DNA of 63,608 nt, counting the filler, from Pelomyxa schiedti (taxonomy: Eukaryota; Protista; Evosea): NCBI GenBank assembly GCA_020536535.1. It is 8 parts of 8 records of this genome, joined end to end, with 100 filler letters (N's around TTAATTAATTAA, not from the genome) between each part and the next. Parts side by side here need not be neighbours in the genome. Positions count along the whole stretch, not along the records: positions 43,010 to 59,197 come from JAHLWZ010001146.1; 7 more parts are not named here. One strand, written 5' to 3'. Below, piece after piece: positions 43,010 through 59,197 of the stretch; the stretch's first letter is position 1; the number at the start of each line of letters is the position of its first letter. Made by a program: the position numbers and the translations under genes. The notes under the pieces are model-generated. The model saw only the letters and a list, made by a program, of their open reading frames with translations, searched no databases and was not told the DNA's origin.

Positions 43010-43128
43010 AAACAAACAAACAAACAAACAAACAAACAAACAAACAAACAAACAAACAAACAAACAAACAAACAAACAAACAAACAAACAAACAAACAAA
43101 CAAACAAACAAACAAACAAACAAACAAA
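43010..43128. repeat. (AAAC)n microsatellite within the first intron of the minus-strand gene
   Basis: About 30 perfect units next to the GTGTAT donor at 43135. Confidence 0.98.
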
Positions 43129-43135
43129 CATACAC

Positions 43136-43450
43136 GAGGCGGTGGTAGTGCCATGCCAGCCCAACTACCCGTGAAATCTCCTTGGTGGGTATCATCCTCA
43201 GCTGCGCGAACGGAACCCGCGACTCCCTCGCCGCCGCCCCCCCCGCCCCCGCAGCCACCGCCTGTGCTTGCCCCACTGCCCCCCCCGTTGTGTTGTTGTT
43301 GTTGTTGTTGCTCGCCGCGGTGGTCGGCGCCTGCTGCGGGTGCGGTGGCGCCACGACGACGACCGGTGCCCGCCGCGGAGCCTGCTGTTGCTGCTGCTGC
43401 GGGGCGCCTGTGGGCCCCGCTGTGTTGGGTGCTTGTTGTGCCCCAGACAT
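43136..43450 (-). CDS. hypothetical protein, first exon only
   Basis: ATG 43450, reading MSGAQQAPNT...PFAQLRMIPTKEISRVVGLAWHYHRL, followed by a GT donor. The rest is lost at the contig end. Confidence 0.6.
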
Positions 43451-43513
43451 CGTTTGGTTGGTTTCGCGAAGGTGAGACCTCTTGTTTTTTTTTTGTTGGT
43501 TGAAACGTCACGC

Positions 43514-46112
43514 ATGGCTTCCAGCACTACGCCGGCACCACCACCACCACCAGCAACAACAACAACAACAACAGGAGGAGGAGGCAGCAGCTCGATGCTG
43601 AGGCACGTGGGGATGAGCGGGTCGTACGGGGTGACGTTCTGGCACCAGCTGGGCAAGCACAAGCTGGACGTCATGAGGCTCAGCGAGCAACCCCTGCCCC
43701 TCGTGGCAAAGTACGCGACCCCCTCGCCTTCGTCGTCGTATGCGACGAGTGAAACACAGTCTCAGAGGTGCGAGCTGAGCATGGACTATAGTTCGTTCGA
43801 GGCAATTGCTAGCGAGGGGGACGACGTGGGCAGGGGATTGGTGTATCGGGGAACCCTGTACAACGCAAACACACAGGTCGGATTCAAGGAGATGAAAAAG
43901 GCTGAATTGTTCGCGGCCGAGGCTAACAAGGTCCCTTTCTCTTGTTAATACTTCATGTCAATGGGAATGTTATATATATATATATGGGGAGTTGTAATTG
44001 TTGTAGAGTTGTGGTAGTAATTTGATTTTGTGTCCAGATATTCGAAGATATCAAGTCGGGAGCTGCACTTCGGGACACCACTCTCCTTAACAGGTTTCTT
44101 ATCGTAACTTATGCTGATTTGAAAAAGTACCACTTCTCCTATATGCTGGGAGTACCCGCAATTCGCTTCGATTCCCCTTCAGCCACTCAACCTACACCGG
44201 CTTCAGACCCTGCCACCAACATCAGTATACCTCATCTCGTTGGCTCACCGGTTCATCTGTCGGCATTACTTTCAGCTCCTCTTACCACAGAGCTTCATAA
44301 GAAGTACTGGTCCCCTCAGTGCAGGTGGCCATTCTTTGTAGTCAAAGTCAGCACTGAGAACCCCGAATCTCTTGACGTTTTACCACTATCGTCATTGCTT
44401 ACCATTGTCACTCCAAATACTCCACTTCCTCCCTCTGTATGGGTGGCATTTGTGGATCCTTCTGGCATGAAAGATAACCCAGGATGGTTCTCTACCTTTT
44501 TTTTAATTATTACCTTTTGACATTACCTACAGGCCTCTCAGGAACTTGTTGGTACTGTTAGCTGTGCAATTCCACTTGCGAACCGTAAAAATTCTCTGTT
44601 ACCGCGATCAGGCACCTTTTGCAGGTACTGCAAAGTTTGTTGTTTTCATTGCACTACCTGACCTCCTCATAAAGAGACTTCTCAAAGTGTAGTTATTGAA
44701 ATTTCTCTCCCTCCTCCACCTGAAGTGGCCAACGCCGTTGGATGGGAACCACACCCAAATGGTAAAATCCAACCGCAATTCGTATCTCTGAGTGAGAGTA
44801 TGGACCCAATCAAGTAAAGAAAATTTCCTATACGAACTTGCAATAAATCATACTGCAGGCTTGCCACAACCGCTGTGGATTTAAATTTAAAGTTGGTGAG
44901 GTGGCGGATGTTTCCTGAACTTGACCTGAATATGCTCGCAAATACTCGCTGCCTTCTTCTAGGAGCAGGTACTCTTGGGTGCAATGTAGCTCGCACTTTG
45001 ATGGGATGGGGGATCAGGAAGATCACTTTTGTGGACAATGCACAAGTGTCATATTCCAATCCAGTCAGGCAGTCTCTGTTTGGTTTTAATCACTGTACAA
45101 CTCAAACGTGGAAAGCAAAGCAAGCCGCCGAGTCACTGATGCAAATATTTCCCGGCATGGTGTGTAATCCTTCCCGAATTCTGGAGTTGAACTTTCTTGC
45201 CAGGTTGCTGAAGGAATAGTAATGAATATTCCAATGCCTGGTCACCCTGTTGTAGCTTCCACACAGGGCATTGTTCAAGAAGCGTGTAGTAAACTTGCAC
45301 AACTGGTGAAGGATCATGATGTTGTTTTCTTACTTGGGGATTCTAGAGAGATGCGGTGGCTGCCTTCATTACTTTGTGCAGCTGAAAACAAGGCACATCC
45401 ATACCTTTCCTCAGGTCAAATACTAAAATATTTGGGTTGTATCAGATTGCCATCACTGCCGGCTTAGGTTTTGACAGCTTTGTTGTCGTGCGGCATGGAG
45501 TAATACCACGCGAACCATCCCCCAGGCTTGGCTGTTACTTCTGCTCTGATGTAGTGGCTCCAAGAGATGTAAGACACCAATTGAAAAGCTTTAAAGTAAT
45601 TACCCTTTCCGATAGTCAATGACAGACAGGACATTAGATCAGACATGCACAGTTACCCGCCCTGGCATCTCCATGGTTGCGTCCGCTATGGCTGTTGAGC
45701 TTCTCATTTCTCTGCTCCATCACCCCCTCAAGTAATTCCCACTATGCATCATATTCTGAATTCTAACCACGGCACCAGAGCGCAAGCGCCGGGAGAAGAA
45801 AGAGATGCAACAAGCATGGGACTTGGCTCTGTTCCACACCAACTAAGAGGATTCCTTTCCCAATGGAATATCCTCACTCTGACCGGCTTTGCTTATTCCA
45901 AGTGTCCTGCCTGTTCTCCGATTGTGTGTACATTTCCTTTGTGATTCCCAACCAACCCTGGAAATACACAGGTCATAGAGGAGTATCAGAAGAGAGGATT
46001 CGAGTTTCTGCTGCAAGTTTTCAACCAACCAACTTACCTGGAGGAACTAACGGGGCTGAACAAGCTATCTGAGGAGCACGATTGGATCTCTGAAGAAAAC
46101 GACGATTTTTAA
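43514..46112 (+). CDS. ATG7: ubiquitin-like modifier-activating enzyme ATG7
   Basis: [82 protein letters not shown] and VPHQLRGFL. Confidence 0.97.
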
Positions 46113-46599
46113 TCATTCAAATCTTAAAGTCGTACGATTCACCAGAATTACTACCACTGTTTCAAGCCAACCCTTCAAACACACAACAGTGCTTGCCCAG
46201 TGGGGATATGCCACAAGCAAGGTTGAGGGTGCTAGCCTGTCGCCAGTCACCTCCCCCCCCGTGTCTCGGCTTGGCGCATTGTGCTCCCACCCGCTGTCGC
46301 TGATCCGAACGTCGTTGAGGGTTTGTTTTTTTCTTATGGGAGGGCACTCAGAAGTGAAGTACCAATCAAATGATGTTCGCACGCAACGCCATCTCAGCTG
46401 CGACAAGCAGACGTCCTTTCGCAAATGAGCAGTGAGTGGTGCTGTGTTATCTTTAGCACCCAATTTTTGGTTTGCAATAGCAAATCAAGGAATAATAAAA
46501 AAAAAACAAAAAGCCAACACCCGATCGGCAGGCCGACGCAGCTCCGTAAAAGCGACACATACATAAAGAAAGCCGGCAACAGCACAACCACAACCAAGA

Positions 46600-49088
46600 A
46601 TGTCGGCAACATCCACACCGTCTTCCATAATTTCGCTTCCGCACACCACGTACACCGGCGCCGGAGGGAGGACAACCGACGAGGAGAGGGAGGGCAGAGA
46701 CGGCGACAGGTTCTCGCGGCGACCCAGGCGCGATCGCTTTGGGGACGAGGACGAGCGCCGGCCTCGGCTCTCCTCGAGCGTCGTTCCCTCGACTATTGTG
46801 GCGTCGAGCGTGGAGGGCGAGGGCGGCGCGGCGGCGGCGGCGACGGCGGCCAGCAACAACACGAAGCACGAGGGCTTCTGTGTGTATGACGAGAAGGATG
46901 CTGATATCTCGGCCTTGATCAAAGAAATGCAAACTGTTTCTTCTGATAGGACTAGTGCGGAAAGGAGCATTCGTGATTTGGAGATACAAGAAAGAATTAC
47001 CTTGTCCAGGCCAAGGTATAGCAGCAACCTTTTTCATTTTTTCTCCTTTTTAACTGGTTCCTTTACTCCAGGCCTCGTAGGGGGGGCGGGGTTGGCCTTG
47101 GAACGGGTATGCGTGGTGGACGTGGCGGTGGCAGAGGAGACGGATCGAGGCGTGGCATGCCGCCTGGTGGACAAGCCTTTTCTCGGGCAATGCAAGCAAT
47201 TAAGCGGCCGCCTGCAGATGATTTGTCTCGCAGAAGTGAGAGGGAGAGATCACGTGATGAACCAATTGATGAGAGTGATGACTTGAAGGGGCCTGCAGCC
47301 CAAAGACGGCGCTTGGTTACACCAAGATTAGCCTCATCTATAAAGAGTGCCAAGTCTGAGGATGAAAAGGAAGGAGAGGGAATGCAACTTGATGAAAAAC
47401 TGCAGGTACTTTGAGAGTGAATTATCGATAATTCTCCCTAACAGAACTTAGGCCCCCCGCATCCCTTCAGTAGTCTCCCGCATCATAAAAGAACGCACAA
47501 CGGAAACCACAGAATCTACTGGCGATAGTGTAAATGAGGGTAGTGAAATTAGTGTTGGTACTGCAGCCTCAGACACTTCCCTCCCTGATTCATCTCACAG
47601 CACACCACGAAGTGGTGTTCCTAGTAAACGTAATGAACAAGTGTTGCGAAATAGAAGGATGTTTGGTGTAATCGTTGGGACACTTCAGCAATTCTCCAAG
47701 AAAGAAACTGAAAATGCTGAACTTGTACTTACCACTTGTCTTCTCTTAATATCTAACTTACACAAGATGGCACGCCGTGAAGAGCTGGAGTCCGAAGTTG
47801 ACAAAAAAGTTCAACAAGAGCACCAAGCCCTTATTGAACAGGAAGTTGCACGAATTCGTGCACAGAGGGAGAAGCAGTTTGAAACAATCACTGCACTCCA
47901 ACTCCGAGAAGAGACATTGTCAACGCAACTCCTGGTGTGTCAGCGGACATGTCCTAACAACCTAACTCCCTAAAAGGAACTCCGTTGGAATAAGCACAAG
48001 CAGTCCCTTACACGTTATATTAAGACAACAACGACCCCATGTATTTACTATTTGCCTAAAAAACCTCTTCCCTCTCAATTACAACCAAACTCTCAAATCA
48101 GTACTTCCACTACAACTTCAATCTCCTCTGGGTCTGACTCCAGTGCAACAATACCTACACAAACCCCACCTTCACCTACTGCTGTGTCAAACAAGGGAGA
48201 TAAAGAAGTAGACTCTGTAGTCACAGATGCAACTCAAAAGCCAGATACAATTACCATTCCCGCAAAAGAAGACACAGCAGAAGAAGGTAGCGTTACTATC
48301 ACTAAAATCTCTCAACCTTACTTTCTTTAGGCAAAGTGGAGGAAGAGAAATCAAAGATTCTCAGCGAGAGGAGCCCGAGAAGAAAATCGAGAAGTTCTAA
48401 GAGTAGGAGTCGCAGCCCAATGCAAGATTCAGTAACCAAGTCAGCAGCAAAGGAAGCAGAAAAAGACAGTGCCACACAAGACAAGACAGGGGGCAAAGAA
48501 GAGGCTGCGCCGTCCAGTTCCACTGACACAGCTCCAAAAGAAAATATGGAAGTGGAAGAAAAGGAGAAGCCGTCATCAGAAGCAGTACCGGTACCAGTGG
48601 TGGAGATCAAGATCGAAAAGCCGGAAGAACCCATGCCAGCTACCACCGCGCCGGACAAGACCGGCAACAAAGAGCCAGAAAAACCTAAGGAGCCAGAGAA
48701 ACCAGAAGCGAAAGAGCCAGAGAAACCAGAAAAAGAGGCCGAGCACAAGGAACCAGCAGCGGCAGCGACGGAAAGCAAGCCAACCCCAGCACCAGAGCCA
48801 AAGGAAAAACCCAAACGTGGAAGGAGCTCATCAAGTTCCCGATCCAGTTCTGGCTCTAGCTCATCAAGCAGCAGCCGAAGCAGAAGTAAAGGTAAGAAGA
48901 AGAGCAAAAGCAGAAGCCATAGTAAAGGGAGAAGAGGGGGAAGGGGCAACAGTGGAAGAAACACCCACAGGAGTAAGAGCCGTGATAGAAGCCGCGGAAG
49001 GAGGACATCACCCAGGGGCAGTAAAGACAAGAGGAGTACTCCAGGGAAGAAGGGGAGCAAAAGCAGAAGCAGGAGTAAAGGAAGATAA
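46600..49088 (+). CDS. PNN: pinin/SDK/memA-family protein with RS-rich C-terminus
   Basis: RNRRMFGVIVGTLQQF motif, coiled coil, YIKTTTTPCIYYLP, and a C-terminal RS/SR-rich tail. Confidence 0.85.
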
Positions 49089-49188
49089 CCTCAAGCTAAA
49101 TTAGAAAATATCAAAGACAATTATCTTGCTCATTTCTTGTTGTCAATCAAAATGGAATGTTGTTATTACAGTTATTTTTGTTTTACAG

Positions 49189-52101
49189 TTAGTTTTTGAG
49201 GGTGCGTGCACATAAGGAGTCCACAATCGGCACAAGTTTCTTGAATGCTGGTCTTGCTAGTGAAAGTGTAATTACAGAGAACTAATTCAAAGGAAACAAA
49301 GCAAATCAACCTTCAGGGTGTTGTGCCCAGCAGCAAGTAATCAAGTCCCGGAAATGTGTTGCGGAATCGGGTATAGGTAGCCGGCTACCGTTGCGGACAA
49401 ACTGGAAGATATCTAATTAAACGAATGAGTGGGACGGTACAGGCGAGGATGATCAAACCATATTGGTCCTTGAAATCGCTGTAGGGTTTGGTTTCACTAC
49501 ATAGGTGGAGGAGGCACACTGCAAAACTGAAAACATCAGCTTTTTTGGTGAATTTCAGTGTGCCGAATACTTCCGGCGCTGCGGATATTAGTACATATGT
49601 TGTTGATGGTGAGAAAAGTTATACCTGTGAAATGGGCTGGTATTACCGCTCCACAACTACTTGCACCTCTTTTCAGGGATGGTGTGGACTTGGTGTATCC
49701 ACCACCTCCCACTACTACGCCACTTTTGGGTGTGGTGGTTGGAGATTTTACAAACAAAGAGCGGGCTACTCCGGCATCTGTTTTAGACATGAAAAAAAGT
49801 TAGAGTGAAGTTTTCATTTACCGGTTATCTTGACAAGGAAGTTTGTCTCGGAACCTTGAGATACAAGCTACATGATTCATGAAACCGGTCAAATAATAAT
49901 AGGAAGGAACCATTAAATTCTCAGTACAGAGATGACCGTGAACGAAGTTTGCTTTGTGAAGTGCAACCATACCGCCAACAATTCCTCGTGCAATTTCCAT
50001 CTGGAGTAGATTTAATCTTACTCTCCCAGATACGTTGGTGGGGTTTACCTGTTGGGCATTTGTGAAAGACTTGGATTCCAGATATTTTGCAATAGACCCC
50101 AAAGTAAAAAACTCCCGCACTACACAAAAGTGCTCTGTGGTTTGGCAGGTTCCAACACAAAACCTTGTAGTAACTTAGAGGGACACTGCAGCAAAGGAAG
50201 AACGCACGCCAAATTTGGGTTCCTTATTGAGCAGCACGCGTCTATCTGAGACTCTAATTCATCCCTCCACATGTTATCATCACTAACACCACTTCCACTT
50301 CCCGCACTTCTTGCTCCACCAACACTAACTCCACCAACGCTCCTGCTACTACCAATTTGAGCTGCAGAAGCGGTAGGTGGTGTGATGTGAGTGGGTGTGT
50401 TTGTTGTGATTACTTTCACAGCCACGTTCGATCCTCTCCAGGTTGCCACAAATACAGTTGAAAAGGTTCCTGTATAATCTGGAGGTGGAAGTGAAAATGC
50501 TGGTGGCAAAACGGACGATGAAGAAGGTGGAGAGGCTGAAGGTAATTTTGACATCTTGTTAGATGCTACAATATGAGGGCTTGTGAAATGCATGTCTTCG
50601 AAGCATAGTTTTGAGCCATAGGCGGTTATATCAATAGGTATTAGAAGTAGATTGGAGCCTATAAAGGTTTAGGATTGAGATCCATCAAAGGGGGAGCGCT
50701 ATGAAGCACACTTTGGGGTGAAGTGAGAGTAACAGCAGTATTGAGAGTTGTGGCTACATGCATTACGAAAGTGAACCTAATTTCCTTAGATTCACCCTAC
50801 GAAAAGTTACTTCTAGACACCCAGTGGAAACAACTCACAGGAAGAAGGTGGCCTTCCGTTATATCCACAGCAATGTCAAAAATAGTTGGGTTGGGTTTTG
50901 GGAGTCTGATGGCAAATGGGAGGGGATTAGGTGTGGCTGTATTTATAGTGGAAGGTGTAGGTGTTATAGTAGGTGAAGGTGTAGAAGTGGGGGATGGTGT
51001 AGATGAAGAATTTGAAGATGTGGGGGCGGGTGAATGAGACATAACTGGAGAAGGTGATGGTGAGTCAGGTGCTTGAGGGTGTATTAGTGTGAGGATATCA
51101 AGGTAAGTATGTCCAATGCGTGTAGACCCACTTTCTGGGTCTCCAAAGTTGAGGGCTATCTTTGAAACCTAACAATTAATGAATTTAATGTTAATTAACG
51201 GCAATATAAAACCTTGAACGGAAACGAATTGGCGACCTGCCTGCCTTACAAATGTAAAGGAAATGCACCATATATATATATAGATATATAATAATATTAT
51301 TATAGAGAAACAATAAAATAAAAAATAAAAAAACATAATAAAATAGAGAACGCACTGTTGAAATAACGAAGCATTTCTTGGTCTTGAAGCCTGGTCAGAG
51401 AATCCCCCCAGACTATGTGGCATTGGTGGCAGGCTGTGCGACGGAGGCCGCCCCAGGACCAGCCCTGCACCTATCCCTCCCACAATGCAGTTCACGCCCC
51501 CGCTAGCGTGATTCCCAACGCCGAAGCCAATCCCAACACCGCCGCCGCCACCTACCCCGCTAGTAGCCTCCTCCATGCCCAAAATAGGAGACACGCTCGT
51601 GGTGGTGGTGGTCGTGGTCGTGGTAGTAGTGCACGAGTTAGTAGTTGTCATCGTAGTAACGGCCACAGGATCTCCGCTTCCGGGAGGGTGATGATTTCTA
51701 CTAGCTGTGCTGCCGGTCCTGCTTTTGGTGGTGCTGGTGCCGCCGTTGGAGCCGAGCGAGTCGCTCCGGGCCAGGGCCACCTCGTCCATCTCGGCCACGT
51801 GGACGTCGACGACGCTCGATGTCGCGGGGGCGACGTACACGGTCCCGACGAGTTGTTCCTCCAGATCAGCCCTCGTTGTGTTGGTCGACGACGCCGTCGA
51901 TGATGACGATGACGACGACGACGAGGAGGAGGAGGACATCCTTGTGTGGGAGCCTCGGCGCTTTCTGCACCACCCGCAGCAGGCCACTCCCATAACACCG
52001 AAAAGCAACACCCCCGCCAGGACCATCACGAGCGCCGGCCACGACGACGAGTACGGCGAATACGTCGCATACGAAAACGACGAAGACGTGTGGCCCACCA
52101 T
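49189..52101 (-). CDS. membrane-anchored TKL-type protein kinase-like protein, probable pseudokinase
   Basis: N-terminal TM WPALVMVLAGVLLFGVMGVACC. Kinase motifs GTFSTVFVATWRGSNVAVK, LHKANFVHGHLCTENLM (HRD replaced), VKITDAG, APEVF, KADVFSF and RPAF. Confidence 0.8.
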
Positions 52102-52239
52102 ACGGTTTGGTGTTCAACGTGTTTGCTTTGGATCCAACAAAGGGAAACGAAAAGGGGTAATTCCCAGAATCACCACCCATAAGTACGGCTCGGGGCTCCG
52201 TATTCCAACACTTGTGTCGGATCCAGGGGGCACATTTTC

Positions 52240-52326
52240 GCCGGAATGAGCCGGGATGGTTCTCGGAGTAGGCTTCAAACCTACTTACGCTGAGATGCGT
52301 AGAGGTCCGATTCCTCCTTTCTGGCG
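52240..52326 (+). tRNA. trnU: tRNA-Sec (anticodon UCA), eukaryotic 9/4 fold
   Basis: 87 nt. Acceptor GCCGGAAUG/CUUUCUGGC with discriminator G; 6-bp D-stem CCGGGA-UGGU-UCUCGG; anticodon arm GUAGG-CUUCAAA-CCUAC; variable arm UACGC-UGAGAU-GCGUA; 4-bp T-stem GAGG-UCCGAUU-CCUC. Confidence 0.95.
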
Positions 52327-52328
52327 TG

Positions 52329-52342
52329 TTTTTTTTTTTTTT
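52329..52342 (+). terminator. Pol III oligo-dT terminator
   Basis: T14 run beginning 3 nt after the tRNA-Sec discriminator base. Confidence 0.8.
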
Positions 52343-52353
52343 GCTTCTGTGTT

Positions 52354-53622
52354 TTAGAAATGACTGACATGCGGGATTGAAAAAAGACCAGGAATGTCAG
52401 CACAGATACAACACATGCCAGGGAGAGCATCAACAACACGTATCTGGTTGTGGTGGCATAGGAAAAGGAACCCTGAAGAAGCTACTGCCATTCCATAGTC
52501 ATATTGGGGTCCATACACAGTTGTGAATTCAATAACCCTCAGTGGCTGCTGTGTGTTGTTGCAATCCCACAGTTCTGCACAGGTGCCAGTCATGGTGGAA
52601 ATGCAGAAGCAGTTTGGGCTCAATGCAGATACTTGAAGGTCATGGTTTACTTTGCTTTTGATTGGTTGCACAGTCCCTGTGCCTTCAGTTACAAGGTGAA
52701 CAAGGTCACCACTAAACGTGGTTTTCAAAGCAAAGCAGTGCACTTTGTTTGTAATAACAAATCTCCCAACAGCGTATACAATAATACCAGCATGGGATCC
52801 AAGTAGGAATTTGGTTGATGACACAATAGATAGACTCCTTCCAGAAAATGACTTGGAGAGGTGAACAACAATCAAGGAACAACGGTCCAGGTGAAATGCA
52901 TCACTCCAAGTAATAATGACCTCATCTGGGTGGAAAGAGTCGAAGTGTGCACCCCAAATTGTGCCCCCGGGGCCCTCAGCAACCTGATGATACAGGGTGA
53001 TACTTTCCTGAATCGACATGTCTTTCAGCTTTCCAATGGTAATTTGGAACCCACTCAGCCATTTGAAGCAGGTAACAGCCCATCTTGGATTTGCATTACT
53101 GGCACTGATCCAAGGAGCAGGTATTGCAAACTCCCTCGTGTCACTTCTGATATCCACGATGCCAAACTCAATTCCAGCTGGAACCGGGTCGATTGTGCAA
53201 TAGTGATTTGGTCCAATCCACCTGCCTGTTGTGCCATTGTAACATGGTGGTTTTCCCAGAATGGTCTGGTGCAATGTCACAGGGGTAGTTACACTCATCA
53301 GAATACGTGATACACCAAAGTAAATTGCCTTGTACTCTTGGTGAGGCATTGTCAGATCCAGCACAAAGTGGTCTCTGGTACTCATCACAAAACGATGCCA
53401 CAACCTGCGAACGAACGAAATCCACACAGATGCGCCCCCTTGCCCCCCGCCGCATGCAGCCCCGCCGTCACCCTCGCCCGGTACCACATGCAACCAACAA
53501 CTGGAGCCACACCGCCGGTGCGACGCCAGGGCCAGTGCCACCATCTGTGATACAGCACTCACCCAACTAACGACGCCTGCCTGCCGCCCAGAGTCATCGA
53601 CGTAAAGCCACGTTGTGTTCAT
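52354..53622 (-). CDS. intronless lineage-specific family protein with N-terminal F-box/SOCS-like motif
   Basis: ATG 53622; SAVSQMVALALASHRRCG; family blocks NANPRWAV, ELWDCNNTQQPLRV and IRVVDALPG. Confidence 0.8.
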   Translation of the reverse strand: MNTTWLYVDDSGRQAGVVSWVSAVSQMVALALASHRRCGSSCWLHVVPGEGDGGAACGGGQGGASVWISFVRRLWHRFVMSTRDHFVLDLTMPHQEYKAIYFGVSRILMSVTTPVTLHQTILGKPPCYNGTTGRWIGPNHYCTIDPVPAGIEFGIVDIRSDTREFAIPAPWISASNANPRWAVTCFKWLSGFQITIGKLKDMSIQESITLYHQVAEGPGGTIWGAHFDSFHPDEVIITWSDAFHLDRCSLIVVHLSKSFSGRSLSIVSSTKFLLGSHAGIIVYAVGRFVITNKVHCFALKTTFSGDLVHLVTEGTGTVQPIKSKVNHDLQVSALSPNCFCISTMTGTCAELWDCNNTQQPLRVIEFTTVYGPQYDYGMAVASSGFLFLCHHNQIRVVDALPGMCCICADIPGLFSIPHVSHF

Positions 53623-53755
53623 CTTAACGTAGTGGCGATGGATTTTCCAGTTGTGGGAATAGTGTGACTGTCCTCGGAGGACCCAAACCGCAAGTGTGAT
53701 GGAACCTTGAGACCTTCTCAGAGCCAATTTGGTTCCGATCTCATATCTGAAGACA

Positions 53756-54823
53756 ATGAGTGGGCGTGGTGGACGCGGTCGCGGAAGAGGGCGAGGAGGG
53801 CGAGGGCGTGGTGGTGGCGGTGCTTCAAGTGGCGGTGGGGGCGACCCACAATTGTCCTCCGCCTTCGCGCAGGCGGCCAGCGGCGGCCGCGGCTCGGGCG
53901 ATGCGTCGGCCTCCTCCTCCTCGTCGCTGGTGCCCCGCCCCGTCGCCGTGCCCAAGACCTACCCGGACGTCGAGTGGCACGAGCTTGCGGAGGAGCCCAC
54001 GCCGCCGGCGGCGCCGGTCACCGCGGCGGGGGCGCTGGCCTTCAGCGGGCCCATGTCGCGGTTCGTGTGCGCGATGGACCCCTTCGGCACGCTGCAGTCG
54101 GCCGCAGACGCCGCCGCCTCCTCGTCTTCCTCCAAGCGGCGGTCGTCGACGACAAGCACAACGAGCAGCAGCGGTAGCACATCAACAACAACGTCGTCGT
54201 CGTCGTCGTCGTCGGCATCGTCGGCATCGTCGCACGCGCCGGGGACTGTGCTGCCCAAAATGCCGGTTGGACCCAATGAGGACAAGTGCGACAGGTTTGT
54301 GGACTACGAGGCTGATAAGCTGTATAGCAAGATGAGGCAGTCGTGCTGGTACTATATGGGCCATGGGGTATGTTGCCATGTTGTATCTTCTTGGCTATCT
54401 GGCTATGTTGATATGTTTGTGTGAATGCGAGGAGTGTTTGTGCTGTTGTGGTGGGTATTGACTAATACCCTCTCTTCCATACAGGAACTTCCTGGCCTGT
54501 GTATGAGTGCCGATGTATTTCCTCCGGAACTGTTGGCTTCTGGGTCCGCTCCCGAGCGTTCTGATGCCAAGAAACATGTTGACCAGATAGCAAAGCAGGA
54601 AGCAGAACAGAAAGCCAAGAAGACAACTGGTGCCGCAAAAAAGAAGGACAAGAAGAAAGGAGAAGGTGAAAAGGCTGCAGCCAACAGTGATGACAGTGAT
54701 GCTGACCCCAACCCTGCTGATGCGGAAAAGGATGAGGATGACTATGTAACAGACTGGAAAAATTTGGAGGATAACGGCGACGATGATGCTATGGATAATA
54801 TGGGTGGGGGTGACGACGATTAA
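53756..54823 (+). CDS. RNA polymerase III subunit RPC7/RPC31-like protein
   Basis: MSGRGGRGRG N-terminus, YSKMRQSCWYY, FPPELL, and acidic tail DEDDYVTDWKNLEDNGDDD. Confidence 0.6.
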
Positions 54824-55075
54824 CTGAACTCAGGTAAAACAAAAAAGTAAAGAGAAGCGTACTTATATTTATGCCTGTAGGTGGAAATTGGGGAAGCAAG
54901 AGATTTACATTTTGTGTTGTGCAATATTTTCTCGAAATCCGGCATGAACTGAGCACTGTGAAGCTAAACTTCCAGCTGGAACCTTTGGAGCTCATACCAG
55001 CTCATGAATAACCTTGACTTCGATTTGTTAGCAAAAAGAAATTAAGGGAAAGTGAACGACACCGTGCGGCTTCCT

Positions 55076-55830
55076 TTAGGAACTTTTCGTCTTATGTGAA
55101 GTTGGTGACTTGGTAGCCCTCAGATGGTTCAGGCCTTGTGTTACGTAGTCCAGTGTCCTCAGAGCTTCTTCCTGCCTGGAGTGAGCTGTATTTGCCATAA
55201 CAGCCACTTGGTTTGATTTGAGAGGTGCAAAAGCTGCCAACTCAGCATCAGACATCGGCAGATAGAACCCCAGTCCCACATTCACAAGCGGCTTCTTTAA
55301 TTCACCAGGAGGCTTCGTCCCCTCAATAAAAACACCTCCCGCAAGATGAAAATACGAGGAAGGAACCTGAAGGCTTGCTCAGTGACAGCAAGAGATAATC
55401 AATATATTTTAGTATACACACATATAATAATTATAATACGAGTTTGCTTTTCAATACTATATATATACACATAAAAGCAAACACCCGGCACCATCAATGA
55501 ATCTGTTGCCTGAGCCAAAACGGCGGGCATTGCCCCATAAGCCTCTGCGGTCAGTGCCCACCGGTCGCCATCAATACCGCTCGCCGCCGCGTCGCTGGCA
55601 ACCCGGCGCTCGAATTCCTCCATCTTCGCGAGCCTCCCTTCGTCCACCGTCGCCGCCGCCGACGCGGCGTCCCCCCGTCGCGTTGCGCTGACGCTGTCGC
55701 CGCCGCAGTCGTCGGCCACGTCGTCGTCTATTGGCACTTGCACGCCACCGACACTGCTCACTATTCCCATAACCATCGCGTTGCTGTCGTGTATCCTTTC
55801 TGGCACAGGCCCATTTGCCTCCGTCGCCAT
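55076..55830 (-). CDS. prefoldin alpha-type subunit, UXT-like
   Basis: Spliced product contains PLVNVGLGFYLPMSDAELAAF...TLDYVTQGLNHL, matching the prefoldin alpha hairpin consensus V-x-(V/L)G-x-GF-x-x-E-(M/L). Confidence 0.6.
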
Positions 55831-56203
55831 GTTTTTTTTGGCTTGTCCAGACAAAGAGGCCTTGTTTTCTGGTAACCATCAAGTTCAACCTTTCTTGGGA
55901 GGCGGGGGGGGGACATACCCCAACCATTACCATTAACACGACGCTCGTAATAGCGACTTAGCTTTTCCTTCTCAAGACCAAATAACTCAAACGCAACAAT
56001 AGTTTATTCAAGCATCTAAAGTCTATCTCACTAGCTACCGAGAACACGTTAACGTAGGAAAACCATCCAAAGTGTGTTAAACACCCCTCTGTCGGTTGGA
56101 CCCTACAAAACCTCTGGCTCATTGCGCCAATCCCTTGGTTTTGATTAAGGTTGAGTGCTGCGTGGAAGGTGTTGAATCATTTTGAAGCCAAATGGTGATT
56201 CCA

Positions 56204-57469
56204 TCAGGTGTGGAATCCACGGGGACAAGCAAAGACCCTGGAACCATGGTCTGGAAATGTGTGTGCTGTTGTGAATGACAGCATCTTGACACCACTCATT
56301 GCATCCATCAAACTGAACGTGTGACCACAGCTGCCACTTCCATCATCATCCTCTTGTGTTTCTGCATGACTTTGCTGGCGTGAAATCAACAGGAAGCCAC
56401 AACCAGCGGTCACTGTTGCATGAGGATACTCGCACACAGGGTGGCTCAGGTCATTGATGTTGTACACCCCCGTTGTGTGGCTCGGTGTGTCATCTGAAAG
56501 GCACAGGTGTTGGTCGTCCACAACGTGGAGTGTGCCTGTGTATTTGCACACCACATTCCCTGTCATTGGGTTGACTACAACTGCGCTGCGGTCATTTCCA
56601 TTGTGGATCATGAGTATCAGGAACACGTTGTCTTCGCTGTCACGCATAAGCCTGGTTGGCATAAAATTCTGGATCGGAATCAATTCCTCAGTTGGCACCC
56701 TGGCCTGAGAAATGAAAGAGAATCTGAGGACCCTGTCTCGGTAAGTCCTCTCCAAGTCGATGAGCAAAACTGGCCCACACCTGGACCTGTCACCTCCAAT
56801 TGCAATGAGGCCATCACCCTCACCTATTCTCGAATCCTCACTGGTGCTTCTGATATTCCATGATGAATTCGCTGTTGTGAAGTGGAAGTGGCTGTAATTA
56901 CTGACTGGAAGTTGCACTTGCAGTAAGTTGATTGTGTGGAGCCTCAGCAAGCTCCACAGCTTCAGAACAGTACCATTCATTGCGGAGCACACACACCACT
57001 TCCTGTTGCATGTCACCACAGCCATGAAGCTATCAGCCAGTGTGTGATTACCCCTTATTAATGGATGCTCTGGCACCGCATCACCTTTTGCCAAGGGCTC
57101 GGCGGAGATACGCATGAGGGTGGTGTAGAAACCGGTGTAACTCCCACTCCCAACAACCATGGTCTCACTGTCAACCAGGCCATAAACAGGACAGTCGTGT
57201 GTCTCAGTCATCACACTCGGCGGGTGGACGATCCCACAAGTCGGTGACACCGTGGCGGTGATGTTGAGAAACCGTGAGGGGTCAGTTGAAATCCGAGCTG
57301 AAATCACCAACCTCGTTGACGGGGCCGTCACCCATAACTGAGAAATATCGCGCAACACAGTGGCAGGGAGTATTCCGGCAGGACTGAGTGTCCCGCACCT
57401 CGAGTGGTGGCACATCACAAAAGCCAGCGCTTGTGACCTCGCTTTGATGTGAACGATGCTCCTCTCCAT
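56204..57469 (-). CDS. intronless lineage-specific family protein, tandem copy A (alternative in-frame ATG at 57577)
   Basis: MERSIVHIKARSQALAFVMCHHSRCGTLSPAGILPATVLRDISQLW; highly similar to 57639-58895. Confidence 0.85.
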   Translation of the reverse strand: MERSIVHIKARSQALAFVMCHHSRCGTLSPAGILPATVLRDISQLWVTAPSTRLVISARISTDPSRFLNITATVSPTCGIVHPPSVMTETHDCPVYGLVDSETMVVGSGSYTGFYTTLMRISAEPLAKGDAVPEHPLIRGNHTLADSFMAVVTCNRKWCVCSAMNGTVLKLWSLLRLHTINLLQVQLPVSNYSHFHFTTANSSWNIRSTSEDSRIGEGDGLIAIGGDRSRCGPVLLIDLERTYRDRVLRFSFISQARVPTEELIPIQNFMPTRLMRDSEDNVFLILMIHNGNDRSAVVVNPMTGNVVCKYTGTLHVVDDQHLCLSDDTPSHTTGVYNINDLSHPVCEYPHATVTAGCGFLLISRQQSHAETQEDDDGSGSCGHTFSLMDAMSGVKMLSFTTAHTFPDHGSRVFACPRGFHT

Positions 57470-57638
57470 CAAACGCTCACAGTGATTGTTTTCGTTTTTC
57501 ACCAAGTTGGCACCTGTCACCTCCTCACACACTACTTCCCTTTCTCCTACCTTTTTAACCCGTCTTTTCCCTACCATGTTGGACAAAGTTTTTAAATCAC
57601 ACCCTCTTTTCTTCCACTCTATCTCCCTGTTCTATGGA

Positions 57639-58895
57639 TCAGGTGTGGAATCCAAAGGAACAAGCAAAGACCCTTGAATATGGGAATGTGTGTGCTGTTG
57701 TGAATGACAGCATCTTGACACCACTCATTGCATGAATCAAACTGAACATGTTACCGCAGCTGCCACTTCCATCATCATCCTCTTGTGTTTCTGCATGAGT
57801 TTCCTGGCGTGAAATCAACAGGAAGCCACAACCAGTGGTGACTGTTGTGTGAGGATACTCGCACACAGGGTGGCTCAGGTCATTGATGTTGTACACCCTC
57901 GTTGTGTGGCTCTGTGTGTCATCTGAAAGGCACAGGTGTTGGTCGTCCACAACGTGGAGTGTGCCTGTGTATTTGCACACCACCTTCCCTGTCATTGCGT
58001 TCACTACAACTGCGCTACCCCTATTGTAGCTCCTGAGTATCAGGAACACGTTGCCTTCGCTGTCACACATAAGCCTGGTTGGCATTAACCTCTGGTCTGG
58101 AATCAGTGTCTCAGTTGGCACAGTGGCCTGAGAAATGAAAGAAAAGCTGAGAACCCGGTCTTGGAATGTCTTCTCCAAATCGATGAGCAGAAATGGCCCA
58201 CACTTTGACCTGTCACCTCCAATTGCAATGAGGCCATCACCCTCACCTATTCTCGAATCCTCACTGGTGGTTCTGATATTCCATGATGAATTCGTTGTTG
58301 TGAAGTGGAAGTGGCTGTAATTCCCACCGACTGGAAGTGGCACCTGCAGTAAGTTGATTGTGTGGAGCCTCAGCAAGCTCCACAGCTTCAGAGCAGTGCC
58401 ATTCGACGTGGAGCACACACACCACTTCCTGTTGCATGTCACCACGGCCATGAAGCTATCAGCCAGTGTGTGACTGCCCCTTATTAATGGAGCTTCTGGC
58501 ACCGCATCACCTTGTGCCAACGACTCGGGGCCGGAGCTGATAGGGATCACGGTGGTGTAGTAAGTGGTGTAACTCCCAACAACCATGGTCTCACTGTCAA
58601 CCAGGCCATAAACAGGGCAGTCGTGTGTCTCAGTCATCACACTCGGTTGGTGGACGATCCCACAAGTCGGTGACGCCGTGGCGGTGATGTTGAGAAACCG
58701 TGAGGGGTCAGTTGAAATCCGAGCTGAAATCACCAACCTCGTTGACGGGGCCGTCACCCATAACTGAGAAATATCGCGCAACACAGTGGCAGGGAGTATC
58801 CCGGCAGGACTGAGTGTCCCGCACCTCGAGTGGTGGCACATCACAAAAGCCAGCGCTTGTGACCTCGCTTTGATGTGAACGATGCTCCTCTCCAT
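57639..58895 (-). CDS. intronless lineage-specific family protein, tandem copy B
   Basis: Same N-terminus as copy A; open 419-codon frame with small indels relative to copy A. Confidence 0.85.
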   Translation of the reverse strand: MERSIVHIKARSQALAFVMCHHSRCGTLSPAGILPATVLRDISQLWVTAPSTRLVISARISTDPSRFLNITATASPTCGIVHQPSVMTETHDCPVYGLVDSETMVVGSYTTYYTTVIPISSGPESLAQGDAVPEAPLIRGSHTLADSFMAVVTCNRKWCVCSTSNGTALKLWSLLRLHTINLLQVPLPVGGNYSHFHFTTTNSSWNIRTTSEDSRIGEGDGLIAIGGDRSKCGPFLLIDLEKTFQDRVLSFSFISQATVPTETLIPDQRLMPTRLMCDSEGNVFLILRSYNRGSAVVVNAMTGKVVCKYTGTLHVVDDQHLCLSDDTQSHTTRVYNINDLSHPVCEYPHTTVTTGCGFLLISRQETHAETQEDDDGSGSCGNMFSLIHAMSGVKMLSFTTAHTFPYSRVFACSFGFHT

Positions 58896-59197
58896 CACAT
58901 AAAAAGGTTCCCCGAAGGGTTATTGATGGGCGAAGATTGGAGAGTACACCAAGCATTTGAGTGCAAGTCAAATGAGAAAAACAGATTTTTTGTGAGCAAG
59001 GCAGGGTGAAGCGGCCCGATTTTGCCGGGATTTGTTGATGTTTTGTGCCGCGGGGCGGTTGGCGCGGCGGCGGCATCGCGGCGTGTGTGTTCGTTGAATC
59101 GGGTCTCGCCGCGGCTGCGCGGCCTTGACATAAATGGGTTTTGGTGATTGTTCAGTGGCTTGTGTCTTTTGATTATCGCAAGAACCACAATAAAAAT

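Follow-up and report, generated by a model that had tools for sequence, protein, structure and literature searches.

The window analysed here, meaning the whole stretch of DNA of 63,608 nucleotides along which all positions are counted, carries at positions 43,010 to 59,197 the whole 16,188-bp contig JAHLWZ010001146.1 of assembly GCA_020536535.1 of Pelomyxa schiedti, an anaerobic, free-living amoeba related to Entamoeba. Analysis of this contig with ARAGORN revealed a single tRNA, a tRNA-SeC with the anticodon tca at 52240-52326(+). The Rfam search agreed with this call: RF01852 matched the same interval on the same strand over the full model (1-91) with 67.9 bits (E 2.5e-12), about 21 bits above the gathering score of 47 bits, and clan competition preferred tRNA-Sec over tRNA. 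RF01852 was the only Rfam family over threshold on the contig, and Rfam found no RNA gene there besides the tRNA-Sec. The features of the gene and its flanks are collected in Table 1.

Table 1 Features of the P. schiedti tRNA-Sec gene and its immediate flanks
Feature	Position in the window	Strand	Evidence
[quoted passage not shown]
tRNA-Sec gene, 87 nt, 9/4 cloverleaf, G73 end, CCA not encoded	52240..52326	+	ARAGORN, RF01852, fold, stem-pair comparison
Anticodon TCA (reads UGA), U33 present, loop CUUCAAA	52275..52277	+	Sequence, ARAGORN, fold
T-arm / internal B-box-like segment GGTCCGATTCC, 10/11 against what we take to be the usual GGTTCGANTCC	52304..52314	+	Sequence, Rfam alignment
C at tRNA position 55 (gene position 68), U otherwise invariant	52307..52307	+	76 environmental genes; PMC5330540
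T14 run, RNA polymerase III terminator, starting 3 nt past G73	52329..52342	+	Sequence

The contig starts with 31 AAAC copies (43010-43134). It bears spliceosomal introns, and its ATG7 gene, the exons of which were searched one at a time, is spread across four or more reading-frame segments. After ATG7 come a pinin-like gene, a fragment of a protein kinase, a membrane ORF rich in Ser/Thr, and several ORFs without a family. The Ser/Thr-rich ORF (51169-52101, minus strand), which contains a membrane-spanning segment, and a kinase-domain exon (49821-50174) lie within one annotated 777-aa gene, and by its sequence this gene looks like a mucin-like receptor kinase. Toward the other end of the contig, two tandem intron-less ORFs on the minus strand (56204-57586 and 57639-58898; 460 and 419 aa) are 85% mutually identical; neither contained a Pfam domain or had a homologue among 5.8 billion proteins, and the pair looks like a lineage-specific duplicated gene. 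The 533-aa ORF adjoining the tRNA-Sec is unrelated to these paralogs. An NCBI model of 340 aa (52281-53349, minus strand) ends in about 20 codons (with KTQKQKKKKHARKEESDLYASQRK before the stop) that follow a 46-nt intron and are read from the strand opposite the T-run and the tRNA-Sec's 3' half. This antisense end is probably an artefact of the published annotation, which lacks the tRNA-Sec and runs a coding exon across its opposite strand.

Folding of the gene gave a minimum free energy of -36.9 kcal/mol (z -3.58), which 0 of 200 shuffles equalled, and the same structure was obtained as the centroid fold, a 9/4 cloverleaf of the eukaryote/archaeal type. The acceptor stem consists of 9 bp with a U·U at pair 8 and is followed by a 2-nt linker; the D arm has a 6-bp stem and a 4-nt UGGU loop with G18 and G19, and the anticodon arm a 6-bp stem and a 7-nt loop. 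The variable arm is long (5 bp plus a 6-nt loop), and the T arm has a 4-bp stem and a 7-nt loop, the acceptor and T stems together amounting to 13 bp. Every feature on which the earlier note had based its call (9-bp acceptor with U-U at pair 8, 6-bp D-stem with UGGU, UCA anticodon, long variable arm, 4-bp T-stem, G73, 87 nt and oligo-T) was verified by the sequence, ARAGORN, RF01852 and the fold. Its description of the gene as intact, with every hallmark in place, stood for these features and for the stems, in which 29/29 pairs are Watson-Crick or G-U, but not for position 55, which carries a C where U is otherwise invariant.

For comparison, a degenerate pattern in which only AUGA (positions 7-10), UGGU and the anticodon-arm core were fixed was scanned against JGI metagenome contigs. 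The scan yielded 120 loci with 81 distinct eukaryote-type tRNA-Sec sequences, 76 of which were confirmed by ARAGORN. The identity of the Pelomyxa gene to these 76 environmental genes did not exceed about 70%, and its RF01852 score lies within the range of 57-79 bits seen in 20 environmental loci, near the low end. Comparison of the stems revealed 12 pairs, G14-C25 among them, in which both bases differ from the commonest pair in the 76 genes. The U·U mismatch that 74/76 environmental genes have at acceptor pair 8 is kept. In simulations of random substitution, the probability that all pairs remain intact was 0.51 after 1 change, 0.07 after 4, 0.0016 after 10 and 0 after 26. Since simulated substitutions break pairs this quickly, no more than a handful of changes can have accumulated free of constraint, and the unbroken stems, despite the low identity and the 12 two-sided changes, indicate divergence under structural constraint. 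The pattern thus points to helices maintained by compensatory change under long structural selection. A loss of Sec already in the ancestor that Pelomyxa shares with Entamoeba is inconsistent with the present look of the gene.

The genomic settings of the environmental genes were diverse. Three metagenome contigs (L026, L029 and L056) carry tRNA-Sec within dense arrays of ordinary tRNA genes, one has it beside a 5S rRNA gene (L071) and one beside RNase MRP RNA (L019). Six contigs (L004, L028, L050, L070, L073 and L074) carry tRNA-Sec in two or three tandem copies spaced by a few hundred bases, with slight differences among some of them. The Pelomyxa gene, unlike the arrayed environmental loci, stands alone between protein genes.

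The T loop of the Pelomyxa gene reads UCCGAUU where UUCRAUU is expected, and the RF01852 alignment shows the conserved U mismatched in the T-arm segment. In tRNAs, U55 is converted to pseudouridine and contacts G18 at the elbow, and the base at position 55 is also part of the internal B-box promoter. By textbook tRNA structure, the G18-U55 elbow contact should be weakened by C55, and judged against GGTTCGANTCC, presumably the usual B-box sequence, the change also appears to weaken the B box (10/11 match). Position 55 was U in 76/76 environmental genes, and it belongs to the six positions that are 100% conserved in 553 eukaryotic tRNA-Sec (G18, G19, U33, U55, C61 and C66; PMC5330540); the Pelomyxa gene has five of these six, U55 being the one that is missing. 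This absence makes full function less certain but leaves the homology unaffected. At positions conserved in at least 95% of the environmental genes, the Pelomyxa gene departs three times (C25, U47 and C55). C25 is compensated by G14, a G14-C25 pair being found in none of the 76 genes, and U47, which replaces the G47 of 76/76 environmental genes, makes an extra variable-arm U-A pair with the conserved A62. One environmental tRNA-Sec (contig L039, 642-727, minus strand) has the T loop CUCAAUU, with C54 and U55, and still scored 71 bits; of the sequences examined, it and the Pelomyxa gene are the two whose T loop does not open with UUC. If the Pelomyxa gene works, C55 would have one of three explanations: a variant that is specific to the lineage and tolerated, correction of the base in the RNA, or a wrong base call in the single-cell assembly.

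A motif scan of the upstream region revealed ACCCATAA, an exact match to DUSE, an element that in Dictyostelium lies ~63 bp upstream of the genes for spliceosomal RNAs and Class I RNAs, works for Pol II as well as Pol III genes, and has been described only in Dictyostelia, its authors expecting none outside (PMC3188802, PMC7919456). The Pelomyxa match resembles DUSE in the exact motif and in lying about 60-65 nt upstream of a gene for a small non-coding RNA, and differs in that the motif is known here from one Pelomyxa gene and one anonymous contig. In that contig, L039, ACCCATAA occurs at -74 of the tRNA-Sec; its GC content is 65%, and its variable arm is the most like that of Pelomyxa among the environmental contigs. 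The 8-mer was found in 1/124 environmental loci with enough upstream sequence, namely L039, and ACCCAAAA is located at -47 in two environmental loci. The motif occurs 8 times over both strands of the 16-kb contig, which corresponds to a ~0.003 chance for an 11-nt window at the right distance; the match is suggestive but post hoc, and a chance occurrence is not negligible. The sequence hints at a candidate snRNA-type promoter. Vertebrate tRNA-Sec genes have an extragenic snRNA-type promoter (PMC2943599), and ACCCATAA may, by analogy, be a parallel to that upstream element. With transcription driven from upstream, the weakened B box would matter less. No TATA-like box was present near -30 of the Pelomyxa gene, an absence that is uninformative because only 23/104 environmental tRNA-Sec genes have one. 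The output of a sigma-70 promoter scan was disregarded as irrelevant to a eukaryote.

A chance tRNA-like sequence, or a mis-called suppressor or serine tRNA, would account for the call without any tRNA-Sec, and ARAGORN and RF01852 do give false tRNA-Sec in some eukaryotes, with specificities of 83% and 90% (PMC5330540). However, the E-value, the margin of 21 bits over threshold and the outcome of the clan competition are set against this, as is the complete tRNA-Sec-specific architecture (13-bp acceptor plus T stem, 6-bp D stem with a 4-nt loop, G73 and U·U). The RF01852 score, the fold and the stem-pair comparison effectively refute this reading, the chance of which we regard as vanishingly small. 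The contig could also derive from a contaminating eukaryote (prey) or a prokaryotic symbiont, and the tRNA would then be uninformative on Archamoebae. P. schiedti hosts bacterial and archaeal symbionts (PMC10579272), and the genome was obtained from wild-type polyxenic material (PMC8887013; PMC10579272); the assembly itself was made from seven micromanipulated cells in single-cell mode and was decontaminated (PMC8887013). On the other side, the contig has spliceosomal introns and eukaryotic ATG7, pinin and protein kinase genes, the tRNA has a 6-bp D stem and a 9/4 fold as opposed to the archaeal 7-bp D stem and the bacterial 8/5 fold (PMC5330540), and a 37-mer scan gave no match in prokaryotic genomes; the introns, the D stem and the fold exclude bacterial and archaeal symbionts as the source. 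A search of the ATG7 exon against 1.84 billion protein representatives matched a single protein, KAH3732602.1, 'autophagy protein 7 [Pelomyxa schiedti]', at 96% identity, and the guess in the earlier note that the organism is an archamoeba was correct. With full-length ATG7 (5.8 billion proteins searched; best 120 of 8000 scored candidates), no relative exceeded 46% full-length identity among the matches listed, and the most identical named match among those listed was the amoebozoan Balamuthia (46%); Planoprotostelium (44%), Dictyostelium, Polysphondylium and Cavenderia were also among them, with plants and fungi at similar levels, and P. schiedti proteins stand roughly as far from one group as from another. 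These ATG7 distances, together with the two large tandem ORFs without any homologue, fit a poorly sampled amoebozoan and argue against contaminating prey, as commonly sequenced prey would give closer matches. We consider contamination very improbable, and it is almost certain by homology that the locus holds a genuine, structurally maintained tRNA-Sec gene of P. schiedti.

At the genome level, benchmarks show the presence of tRNA-Sec to be a near-perfect marker of selenoprotein use (PMC5330540). Reasoning from the tRNA gene, we regard it as plausible, and on the whole somewhat probable, that the gene functions and that the amoeba recodes UGA as Sec; with C55, the copy may instead be impaired. 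The earlier statement that no selenoprotein gene was found holds for contig JAHLWZ010001146.1: neither selenoprotein nor Sec machinery genes were seen on its 16,188 bp, and Rfam at a permissive threshold detected no SECIS element on it. In the mechanism that we envisage, RNA polymerase III would transcribe the nuclear tRNA-Sec gene, probably from the DUSE-like snRNA-type element ACCCATAA at -65, with assistance from the internal B box and with termination in the T14 run. The ends of the transcript would then be processed and CCA added. SerRS would charge the tRNA with serine, PSTK, recognising the long D stem, would phosphorylate it, and SepSecS, with selenophosphate from SPS2, would turn it into Sec-tRNA. 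Finally, eEFSec and SBP2 would deliver Sec-tRNA to UGA in SECIS-bearing mRNAs. On this scheme P. schiedti would keep the Sec trait, the loss in Entamoeba would be secondary, and some gene models would probably be cut at Sec-UGA.

Two readings of C55 compete with a working gene that truly carries it. The C at 52307 may be an assembly base error, so that the true gene has U55 and is an ordinary functional tRNA-Sec. A single transition exactly where a real change is least expected favours this, as does the origin of the assembly from seven micromanipulated cells in single-cell mode (PMC8887013). However, per-base errors are rare in short-read assemblies and the rest of the gene is undamaged. An exact 37-mer of the gene had 0 matches in the prokaryotic genomes and viral contigs scanned for an independent copy. 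We judge such an error improbable. Alternatively, the locus may hold an impaired copy or a very young relic, that is, a true homologue crippled by the change from U55 to C, either after a very recent loss of Sec or beside another, intact copy that serves in its place. The invariance of U55 in the 553 and 76 eukaryotic genes is consistent with this, and 1 to 3 neutral hits leave all stems intact with a simulated probability of 0.51 to 0.14. The related Entamoeba lineage is not known to have the Sec pathway. Some other genomes are known to hold additional tRNA-Sec copies that do not function, but most Sec-using genomes have a single tRNA-Sec gene (PMC5330540). The unbroken stem pairs, the intact G73 and anticodon, the terminator and the plausible upstream element also weigh against impairment, and the loss of Sec would need to be extremely recent. 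We regard an impaired copy as unlikely, though less so than a base error. The most specific form of the working-gene reading is that P. schiedti decodes UGA with a true C55 tRNA-Sec, the first exception to U55, either tolerated or C-to-U edited, under a DUSE-like promoter, and that this snRNA-type promoter and its use for tRNA-Sec are both older than the split between Archamoebae and Dictyostelia. Taken as a whole, this proposal is possible but tentative.

Comparison with known systems places the gene within the eukaryotic type. It shares with eukaryotic tRNA[Ser]Sec (RF01852, e.g. vertebrate) the length of 87 nt, the 9/4 fold, the U·U at pair 8, AUGA at positions 7-10, the UGGU D loop, the anticodon arm core AGGCUUCAAACCU, G73, the absence of an encoded CCA and the T-run terminator. 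It differs in having C55 and not U55, U47 and not G47, the G14-C25 pair, and no TATA-like box near -30. The 9/4 fold is part of the definition of eukaryotic tRNA-Sec, and the discriminator G73, which the Pelomyxa gene carries, is required in tRNA-Sec (PMC5330540). Dictyostelium and Acanthamoeba belong to the same supergroup as Pelomyxa, and selenoproteins are proven or strongly supported in both. The tRNA-Sec of Dictyostelium discoideum was reportedly dealt with by Shrimali et al. in 2005. Five selenoproteins and 75Se labelling are on record for Dictyostelium (PMC2375036), and Acanthamoeba castellanii has a Sec-type thioredoxin reductase (TrxR-L), a tRNA-Sec (RNAcentral entry) and a SelB-like factor (PMC8038987). 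Pelomyxa differs from both as an anaerobic archamoeba, and we found no report of Sec use for Archamoebae. Given the selenoproteins of Dictyostelium and Acanthamoeba, an ancestral amoebozoan Sec system is expected, and since Sec is known elsewhere in Amoebozoa, the Pelomyxa gene would represent retention and not a surprise gain. In the anaerobic diplomonad Spironucleus salmonicida, a tRNA-Sec in a genome survey was the first hint of Sec use (PMC1805757); the same logic applies here, as both are anaerobic protists with a tRNA-Sec, but the lineage is unrelated (Metamonada).

None of the articles covered by our literature search connects Pelomyxa, Mastigamoeba or Archamoebae with selenocysteine or selenoproteins. 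There is no mention of tRNAs or selenium in the paper on the P. schiedti genome, and the string 'seleno' is absent from its text supplements too (PMC8887013). The tRNA-Sec thus appears to be unreported for Archamoebae. Current views are not overturned by this finding, as Sec use is scattered among protists, with Amoebozoa already included (PMC4561486). The two oddities of the Pelomyxa tRNA-Sec are C55 and the DUSE-like element: C55, if real, would test how absolute the U55 rule is for tRNA-Sec, and the motif, if confirmed on snRNA genes, would extend across Amoebozoa an element so far described only in Dictyostelia. Should the gene work, models that are cut or mis-spliced at Sec-UGA would be among the 19,876 predicted P. 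schiedti proteins. The Sec trait would also extend to Archamoebae, a strictly anaerobic group, and its absence in Entamoeba would be a secondary loss tied to that lineage and not to anaerobiosis.
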